Positions 61,558 to 63,400 of a stretch of 64,000 bases of DNA are shown here, piece by piece. The stretch is from the NCBI GenBank assembly GCA_011109175.1, contig RDEW01000005.1:372001-436000 (forward strand). The letters are read 5' to 3'. The DNA is from Dicyema japonicum (Eukaryota > Animalia > Dicyemida). The translations under genes and the position numbers were made by a program. Numbering within the stretch: position 1 is the stretch's first letter; the number at the start of each line of letters is the position of its first letter. The notes under the pieces were generated by a model. That model did no database searches. It worked only from the letters and a program-made list of their open reading frames with translations, and was not told where the DNA came from.

Positions 61558-62154
61558 TCAAGAATCACGGTCTTTTTTGAGATCGACTCTTTGTAGCTTT
61601 ATAAACTTGGAATTATTTCCAATTACGAGCTGTTTGTTCGCTTTGTGTGAGACTCTGACGGACGCCGCAAGCTTATTCAGAGAGAATTTTTGATTGTGGT
61701 CGTGTACATTCACTAGAAAGTTTGAATGGGAGTCCTCAATGGATTTTTCATAGACAGCTATTAGATAAAATTAGTCGTATAACTATAATGAGTCCCGTAA
61801 CGGATTCCTGATCTAACAATGTATCCCATGTCCCTTAGAGCCTTGTAGGTTTCAAATTTTAGTTCAAAGTCTTGATCCAGATATTGAAAATGATCCTTTA
61901 TGTCTTTAAAAGTCATCGGACGATCCTTGAAGCGTAATGAAACAGATCACCCAGTTCATGTTGATGATTTTGAAGTTATCAATAACTCCAGTTAGATAAA
62001 GACCCTCTTCTAATGAAAGAACTAACACTTCATCATAACTTTCGGGTTCCCCTCTAGAAAAGTTACCCTTTCCATAGTATCCCAGGTTATATATGTATTT
62101 TTCATGCTCCTTATTCTTGACAATGACGAAATATCCCACTAACTCTGCTTGCAT
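61558..62154 (-). CDS. TSEN2: tRNA-splicing endonuclease catalytic subunit SEN2, 3 exons, about 181 aa
   Basis: GYYGKGNFSRGEP, LVLSLEEGLYL, YKALRDMGYIVRSGIRYGTHYTVYEKSIEDSH..RVSHKANKQL; introns of 25 and 26 nt. Confidence 0.88.
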
Positions 62155-62190
62155 CACCTCCACTCAGAAACAATATTTATTTATTTAAAA

Positions 62191-62677
62191 TTAATAATGT
62201 CTTATTAATTCATTTAAAAAATCTTTTTGTTCATTTTCAACTTTTTTAACGTAATTCAGTTCAATTTTGAGCCTGAAATCAAAATTATAAAAAAAAAAAA
62301 CTTTTCCAGTGTTAGTCTCCGTTCCTCAAGAATGCCAGCAAGCTGTTGAACTTTAAGTTTTTTGGTTTTCTCCAAATTAATTAGCTGATTCTTCTTAGAG
62401 TTTACCTAGGAAATGTGGTCACCCTTTACATTTGCCTTAGCTTGACTAATCTCCGCTGAGAGGTTTTCAAATAGTTGGATATATTCGGCCACTGTTGTTT
62501 TGAAGTCTTTTACGGCTAAAAGTAATTTATCCTTTAACATTCTGTAAATTCGGAACATTCATTTTTTAAATTTTCAGAATTTGTAGCCACATGTGGTTCG
62601 ACTACACGAATTTGCCCAAATTCATCGAAACTAAGACCAGCTTTGGACATTAAGTCTTGTGTGCCTTGCGATATCAT
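62191..62677 (-). CDS. IFT20: Intraflagellar transport protein 20, 4 exons, about 136 aa (absent from the ORF track)
   Basis: Introns of 23, 24 and 29 nt give AGLSFDEFGQIRVVEPHV..LKNECSEF..QQLAGILEERRLTLEKLKIE..KVENEQKDFL, collinear with IFT20 (AGLHFDELNKLRVLDP..LKEEC..KVEAEQNEF). Confidence 0.9.
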
Positions 62678-62739
62678 TATAAGACTATGGCAACAATTTT
62701 TAAATTATAAAATTTAAATATATTTTTTTCATTTTTTTG

Positions 62740-63400
62740 TAGCTCAAAACAGCATACAAAGAAATTTGGCACTCTCTTATGAGATACAGAAGACATACTA
62801 CAAAGAAAATCACTAGCAGGTTTCGTTCTTAAAAGACTAAACAACGTATGGTTACGAGGTAAACAACTTCCTAAAAATCAAATTATACAATATGTTCGTA
62901 AAACCGGTTTTACTGTACAACTCTTCTACCTGGGCACTTACAACGCATGAAATGGAAAGTCTGAACTCCTTTCATAGAATGCAGCTCAGATACATTCTAA
63001 GAATTTCCTGGCCAAATCACACCTCAAACAAATACCTCTATTCCCATTACGATATCCACCTATTGGACGAAGAAATAAGAAGTAACAGATGGGGCCTATT
63101 TGGTCACATCTTAAGAAAGAACAGGAATACTCCCGCTAATCTCGCGATGGAACACCACTATGTTCCTCATCTGGGATCGACTTTCCGGGGAAGACAACGT
63201 ATTACTCTACCAACCCTTCTACATCAAGATCTAACTTAGATTGGGAAAGAGTTGACGTCGGCAGATTATTTTGAACACCTGAGGGACCTATCGAGGAACA
63301 GAGGGAACTGGAAGCGGTTAACAAAACGCATCCAGGAGAGGGTGGCACTAGCGAGATAACTTTACTAACGTTCTTTTGCGGTGTGCTTATTAATAATAAT
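62740..63400 (+). mobile_element. RTE LINE, 5'-truncated
   Basis: FVKPVLLYNSSTW..LNSFHRMQLR..WGLFGHILR..PANLAM..RGRQRITLP; ends in (TAA)n. Confidence 0.85.

Follow-up and report, generated by a model that had tools for sequence, protein, structure and literature searches.

How can two unrelated genes on the same strand each be expressed when the second one begins only 36 nt after the first one ends? The question is raised by the minus strand of a 64,000-nt stretch of DNA (C323:372001-436000, here called the window) from Dicyema japonicum, a parasite of octopuses. In this window, the gene encoding IFT20 lies immediately upstream of a gene encoding a catalytic subunit of the tRNA-splicing endonuclease. 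The initial annotation of the locus read this arrangement as an operon that is resolved by the trans-splicing of a spliced leader (SL).

The published genome of D. japonicum comprises 67.5 Mb in 377 scaffolds, with 36.7% G+C, 49% repeats, and 5,012 genes (PMC6736024). The genome-wide searches described here covered 377 assembled contigs that total 67,542,437 bases, with a G+C content of about 36-37%. Tiny introns are a hallmark of this animal: those of the genome are 20-30 nt long (PMC13644364), and those of the gene pair are 23-29 nt. In the text available, the genome paper describes the affinities of dicyemids with flatworms as recently shown (PMC6736024).

The IFT20 and endonuclease genes

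The IFT20 gene (62191..62677, minus strand) contains exons at 62677-62539, 62515-62430, 62405-62302, and 62272-62191, which encode 136 codons followed by a TAA stop (62193-62191). Its introns of 23, 24, and 29 nt are all GT-AG, and its exons sum to 411 nt and are in frame, as seen both by direct reading and by a scripted frame check. Both gene models were searched against Pfam exon by exon, with each exon taken separately. Exon 1 of IFT20 matches PF14931 at 32.5 bits (cut-off 27) over profile positions 1-33, and exon 4 matches positions 98-119 with an E value of 0.047. Thus, the name given to this gene originally is borne out, with exon 1 above the family cut-off and both ends of the profile covered. 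Upstream of IFT20, about 215 nt from its ATG, the plus strand carries a C-terminal fragment of a LINE reverse transcriptase (62892-63239), which limits the space for an IFT20 promoter.

The endonuclease gene (61558..62154, minus strand) contains exons at 62154-61951, 61925-61784, and 61757-61558, totaling 546 nt, which encode 181 codons followed by a TGA stop. A scripted check found its splice sites and frames intact, with introns of 25 and 26 nt. Exon 1 matches PF02778 (tRNA_int_endo_N) at 41.2 bits, starting at residue 1 and at profile position 1, while exons 2 and 3 match PF01974 (tRNA_int_endo) at 32.3 and 33.9 bits. The alignment with M. jannaschii EndA pairs the catalytic His and Lys of the two proteins; the catalytic Tyr, which adjoins the split codon at intron 2, was read by eye only. 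The exons match only archaeal EndA chains, and the gene product is the size of EndA. There is one other clear paralogue of the catalytic domain in the genome (C35:1074287-1074505), and it matches Sen34 (E = 4.5e-7), leaving the window gene as the only non-Sen34 catalytic paralogue. Because the C35 paralogue matches Sen34 and the window gene matches only archaeal EndA, the window gene would be Sen2-like (TSEN2) by elimination only. Of the earlier name TSEN2, then, the catalytic subunit stands, on the evidence of PF02778, PF01974, and the His and Lys residues, while Sen2 in particular is an assignment by elimination. A word search of protein collections with endonuclease exon 1 gave no match, and a comparison of this exon with 1.84 billion representative proteins gave two distant matches and no Dicyema protein.

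The next gene after the endonuclease, which encodes a prefoldin subunit (PF01920; 59113-59484, minus strand), lies 2,074 nt away, and the region between the two was examined for genes without finding any. A word search of protein collections with the prefoldin ORF also gave no match. This gene has a probable intron of 24 nt that is in frame and free of stop codons (59362-59339), and its ATG is preceded by TATAAA at about 21 nt and by ttttAG at 4 nt.

The spacer and its acceptor-like AG

Direct reading of the minus strand confirms that the IFT20 stop and the endonuclease ATG are separated by 36 nt (62155..62190). It also confirms the two overlapping AATAAA words within this spacer (62185-62176), which may serve as the poly(A) signal of IFT20, as a TATA-like element for endonuclease transcription, or as both. 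These words lie 11-21 nt before the AG proposed as a trans-splice acceptor (62164-62163), which is located 8 nt before the endonuclease ATG and has G at position -3; a second AG is present at 62159-62158. The earlier claim that the proposed acceptor has no evident donor also holds, as there is no GT between 18 and 45 nt upstream of the AG. A readthrough fusion of IFT20 and the endonuclease was considered and rejected: three in-frame stops separate the two ORFs.

The AG was judged against a sample of 29 start codons and a control set of 11,079 ATGs. The sample is made up of 26 distinct small-GTPase genes, in which the Ras profile fixes the first exon and the start, together with IFT20, the endonuclease, and prefoldin. 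An AG is present no more than 10 nt upstream of the ATG in 15 of the 29 real starts (52%) and in 48.5% of the controls (p = 0.44). A class of pyrimidine-rich (Y-rich) acceptors is mildly enriched before starts (9/29 versus 15.8% of controls; p = 0.03). The cis acceptors of this genome are themselves weak, consisting of an A/T-rich stretch and then NAG, and a G at -3 was seen at 1 of about 24 junctions sampled. At one junction in another gene (L054; C46, ~860.7-860.8 kb), every solution for the cis intron that keeps the frame uses a GAG acceptor, indicating that G at -3 is possible but rare. The initial annotation had pointed to a "T-rich acceptor-like tttctgAG". This element proves uninformative, since an AG near an ATG occurs at the control frequency, and it would be a poor acceptor, since cis acceptors so seldom carry G at -3.

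The 5' flanks of Dicyema genes

The base composition of 5' flanks was determined for 28 ordinary starts, namely the 26 small-GTPase genes, IFT20, and prefoldin (loci L042-L088 and the window). In these genes, A+T starts from about 63%, reaches 82-85% in the interval from -80 to -21, and is lower again once the coding sequence begins. Within the interval -50 to -10, TATA-like hexamers are found in 17 of the 28 genes (61%) and before 17% of control ATGs (p = 3e-7), and AATAAA is found at 6 of the 28 starts and in 5.8% of controls (p = 0.005). The flank of IFT20 (62678..62777, minus strand) is a candidate core promoter with this composition, containing 78% A+T overall and 85% between -80 and -21. 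As the promoter-like elements normally lie within about 80 nt of the ATG, the leaders of the mRNAs must be short, which implies that very short 5' leaders would be found throughout the genome. At a Rab-like gene (L052, ~1330-1500; C323, ~2,065,240-2,065,410), a tandem duplication of 135 nt includes 5'-flanking sequence as well as the start codon and the first 16 codons, creating two identical in-frame candidate starts.

The endonuclease gene contains 90% A+T between -80 and -21, and most of this stretch is supplied by the last exon of IFT20. That exon (62191..62272, minus strand) is 80% A+T, versus 60-64% in the other exons of IFT20 and in all exons of the endonuclease. Relative to the endonuclease ATG, it spans -118 to -37, the usual position of the A/T-rich 5' flank in this genome. 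Composition thus suggests that a promoter for the endonuclease may be embedded in the last exon of IFT20. The earlier argument that the locus leaves essentially no room for a promoter fails, since the usual signature of a 5' flank is present in the spacer and runs on into the IFT20 exon. The use of AATAAA as a cue for an operon likewise fails to discriminate, as this word, like A/T-rich words in general, is typical of the 5' flanks of ordinary genes here.

Spacing of neighboring genes

Other gene pairs provide a measure of how unusual the spacer is. Among co-oriented neighbors, a GTPase gene is followed by a DEAD-box helicase gene at about 240 nt (L059; the helicase start is a candidate), and SPT5 is followed by a Rab5-like gene at about 430 nt (L045). 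Because the co-oriented neighbors measured, including the endonuclease and prefoldin, are 240-2,074 nt apart, a spacing of 36 nt is extreme for genes that share an orientation. Nevertheless, a handful of pairs like this one are expected anyway among some 5,000 genes. Coding ORFs of at least 45 codons that end within 250 nt upstream of the 26 GTPase starts were also sought, and none was convincing, in a scan that is insensitive to short last exons.

Even closer contact is seen in a convergent pair (L085:527-546; C321:43026-43045), in which a Sar1-like gene on the plus strand and a Rac-like gene on the minus strand have only 14 nt between their stop codons. The last exon of the Sar1-like gene matches positions 150-174 of the 174 in the Arf profile, and the Rac-like gene ends in a CAAX box. 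With so little sequence between the stops, the 3' ends of the two transcripts must overlap each other's coding sequence. Thus, near-contact of genes occurs in Dicyema without operons, and tight packing is not tied to co-orientation.

Search for a spliced leader

A literature search found no report of spliced leaders or operons in dicyemids, mesozoans, or orthonectids, and the genome paper, in the text available, mentions neither (PMC6736024). When the whole genome was searched with the Rfam SL1 family, only noise was obtained, at 21 bits.

The small RNA genes of Dicyema offer another route to an SL RNA. The genes for the U1 and U2 snRNAs (loci L010-L025) share a word, TTYAAAGCATT, that resembles a proximal sequence element (PSE) and lies about 75 nt upstream of +1. 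This PSE-like word occurs 284 times in the genome, versus 238 for the control, and in combination with an Sm-like word it gives 6 matches, versus 0 for the control. The U1 genes have an unusual Sm site, AUAUUUUUUCC, and every U1 match falls below the Rfam cut-off (<=69 bits). Tandem arrays of 5S rRNA are present at C336:218-224 kb, with a period of about 1.9 kb, and at C223:851-860 kb, with a period of 1.9-2.2 kb; a U2 gene adjoins the array on C223. No other Rfam family was found within the 5S repeat units.

One of the six combined matches, on C168, looks like a real small RNA gene of about 85-100 nt that belongs to no Rfam family (L028:1478-1650, minus strand; C168, ~90.6-90.75 kb). It carries the U1/U2-type word about 75 nt upstream, an Sm-like site, AUUUUUGG, and a strong closing stem (z = -4.4), and it is located directly after the tail of a retroelement. 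A second copy, with 95% identity, is found at C4:51672-51857. The putative leader of this RNA is not over-represented in the genome, with 9 matches versus 6 for controls. As a candidate for the SL RNA it was not accepted: there are only two copies, no excess of the leader by itself, and no tie to splicing.

How the gene pair may be expressed

The reading that we judge best, with a probability of roughly 45%, is that IFT20 and the endonuclease are overlapping but separate transcription units within a tightly packed gene island; we rank it above an operon resolved by an SL, as somewhat more likely. IFT20 would be transcribed from its own A/T-rich flank, and transcription of the endonuclease would start in the spacer or in the last exon of IFT20, a start position suggested by composition only. 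The A/T-rich stretch would be the core promoter of the endonuclease and would probably also hold the poly(A) signal of IFT20, at which the IFT20 mRNA is predicted to end. The endonuclease mRNA would then be capped and monocistronic, and its very short leader would not include an SL. Separate units are favored because they explain the compositional signature, need no RNA machinery that is as yet unreported, and fit the convergent example. However, a promoter within the last exon of an upstream gene would be exposed to transcriptional interference, and a start upstream of 62185 would put the AATAAA words into the endonuclease leader. The last exon could also owe its A/T richness simply to the peptide it encodes, which is rich in Lys, Asn, Glu, and Ile. 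In addition, 36 nt is exceptional next to the 240-430 nt of the other co-oriented pairs measured, such spacings in other animals usually belong to operons or dicistronic mRNAs, and the mild enrichment of Y-rich acceptors before starts is a point against separate units as well.

That same enrichment speaks for the alternative, an operon. Here, a single pre-mRNA would arise from the IFT20 promoter and undergo cleavage and polyadenylation behind the AATAAA words, and a leader would be joined at the AG (62164-62163). The resulting endonuclease mRNA would be capped, with 8 nt from the leader to the AUG, and the junction would be of the Ciona or C. elegans SL1 type, which has no intercistronic sequence. 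We regard this as possible, though doubtful. In its favor, the genes are co-oriented and only 36 nt apart, versus 240-2,074 nt for other co-oriented neighbors; AATAAA stands 11-21 nt before an AG, and no cis donor is present 18-45 nt upstream of this AG; and the layout matches that of operons whose poly(A) site abuts the SL acceptor (PMC12582326). Furthermore, SL trans-splicing is present in flatworms, where the available text of the genome paper places the affinities of dicyemids (PMC6736024), and the genome does contain one small RNA gene of the snRNA type, with a PSE-like word and an Sm-like site. Against an operon stand the lack of any report of dicyemid SL trans-splicing in the literature search and of any Rfam SL1 match, the mere two copies of the C168 RNA with no excess of its leader, the chance frequency of AG before ATG, and the G at -3, which makes a poor acceptor. 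The A/T-rich words and AATAAA are equally typical of an ordinary 5' flank, and the 14-nt convergent pair provides packing without an operon.

Two further explanations are less probable. In one, which we consider improbable, a mature dicistronic mRNA would be made without trans-splicing and its second ORF translated by reinitiation or internal entry. The 36-nt spacer and the good start contexts, in which position -3 is A in IFT20 and G in the endonuclease gene, would suit such an mRNA, and the 3' flank of the endonuclease lacks AATAAA and has only a TATAAA-like word, which could serve the whole unit. However, seven further ATG triplets are present in the IFT20 exons and the spacer before the endonuclease ATG, ruling out leaky scanning of the kind seen in green algae, and the double AATAAA directly behind the IFT20 stop would favor 3' end formation ahead of the second ORF. 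Reinitiation would have to follow a first ORF of 136 codons, and after an ORF of this length it is inefficient in eukaryotic translation. The other explanation is that the gene model or its expression is wrong, so that the endonuclease is cis-spliced from an IFT20 exon, starts elsewhere, or is silent. A fusion from the exon 1 donor of IFT20 to the AG at 62164-62163 would indeed keep the frame, since exon 1 ends in phase 1 and there are 8 nt from the AG to the ATG. Such a fusion, however, demands an intron of about 375 nt, whereas introns in this genome measure 20-30 nt (PMC13644364). A different start is at odds with an N-terminal Pfam domain that begins at residue 1 of the ORF and at profile position 1, and a faulty model is at odds with catalytic His and Lys residues that align with archaeal EndA and with the intact splice sites and frames. 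Another point against this whole class of explanation is that the genome has no catalytic paralogue other than the window gene and the Sen34-like one; we consider the class very unlikely.

Comparison with known systems

The Dicyema pair resembles the operons of Ciona intestinalis and the SL1-type operons of C. elegans in that co-oriented, unrelated genes have practically no intercistronic sequence and a poly(A) signal is followed within a few bases by an AG that shortly precedes the ATG of the downstream gene (PMC12582326). Those operons, however, are defined by an SL RNA and by downstream mRNAs that bear the SL, whereas the Dicyema pair is known from genomic sequence alone. In addition, the candidate acceptor in Dicyema is GAG, unlike the U-rich YAG that is typical of trans-splice sites. 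The operons of cestodes and trematodes also provide a parallel, since these flatworms are spiralian parasites in which genes on the same strand lie no more than 300 nt apart, mostly two per unit (PMC12582326). In the supplementary files of that work, neither IFT20 nor the tRNA-splicing endonuclease is named (PMC12582326). The median intercistronic distance in S. mansoni is 99 nt, however, rather than about 0. Flatworm leaders end in AUG, and flatworm SL RNAs carry a UVUUUGG Sm-like motif; no such gene was found in Dicyema.

In compact genomes, such as those of microsporidia and yeasts and in the non-operon genes of Oikopleura, a downstream promoter or start can lie inside the 3' end of the upstream gene. 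These compact eukaryotic genomes have very short leaders and trailers, as well as convergent genes that nearly touch, like the 14-nt pair described above. The Dicyema genome differs in not being compact overall: its 67.5 Mb contain about 5,000 genes and 49% repeats (PMC6736024). Tight packing is confined to gene islands.

Dicistronic genes are known in insects. Dicistronic nuclear mRNAs are also known in green algae (PMC7896298, PMC11291117). The algal and insect mRNAs resemble the Dicyema pair in that two unrelated ORFs share a strand and are separated by a few tens of bases (PMC7896298). The algal mechanism, however, is leaky scanning, which needs an upstream ORF that is poor in AUG (PMC11291117), whereas in Dicyema the intervening ATGs number seven.

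Significance

The gene pair is a new example of a known arrangement, and only resolution by an SL would be new for the phylum. It is a tentative and rather unlikely proposition that dicyemids possess SL trans-splicing together with Ciona-type operons that have no intercistronic sequence, with IFT20 and the endonuclease among them. If it were true, dicyemids would join nematodes, flatworms, tunicates, and a few other groups, adding one phylum to those with trans-splicing, and the process would be linked to the most extreme miniaturization of introns known in bilaterians. It would also bear on the question of a repeated origin of trans-splicing in fast-evolving parasites whose genes have been compacted. 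Under either reading, gene pairs this close are liable to be fused or wrongly split by annotation pipelines. If IFT20 and the endonuclease are separate units, as we favor, the locus would show how far gene islands can be compressed within a genome half of which consists of repeats. In this case, a coding exon of one gene would double as the promoter of the next, and leaders would not exceed a few tens of bases.
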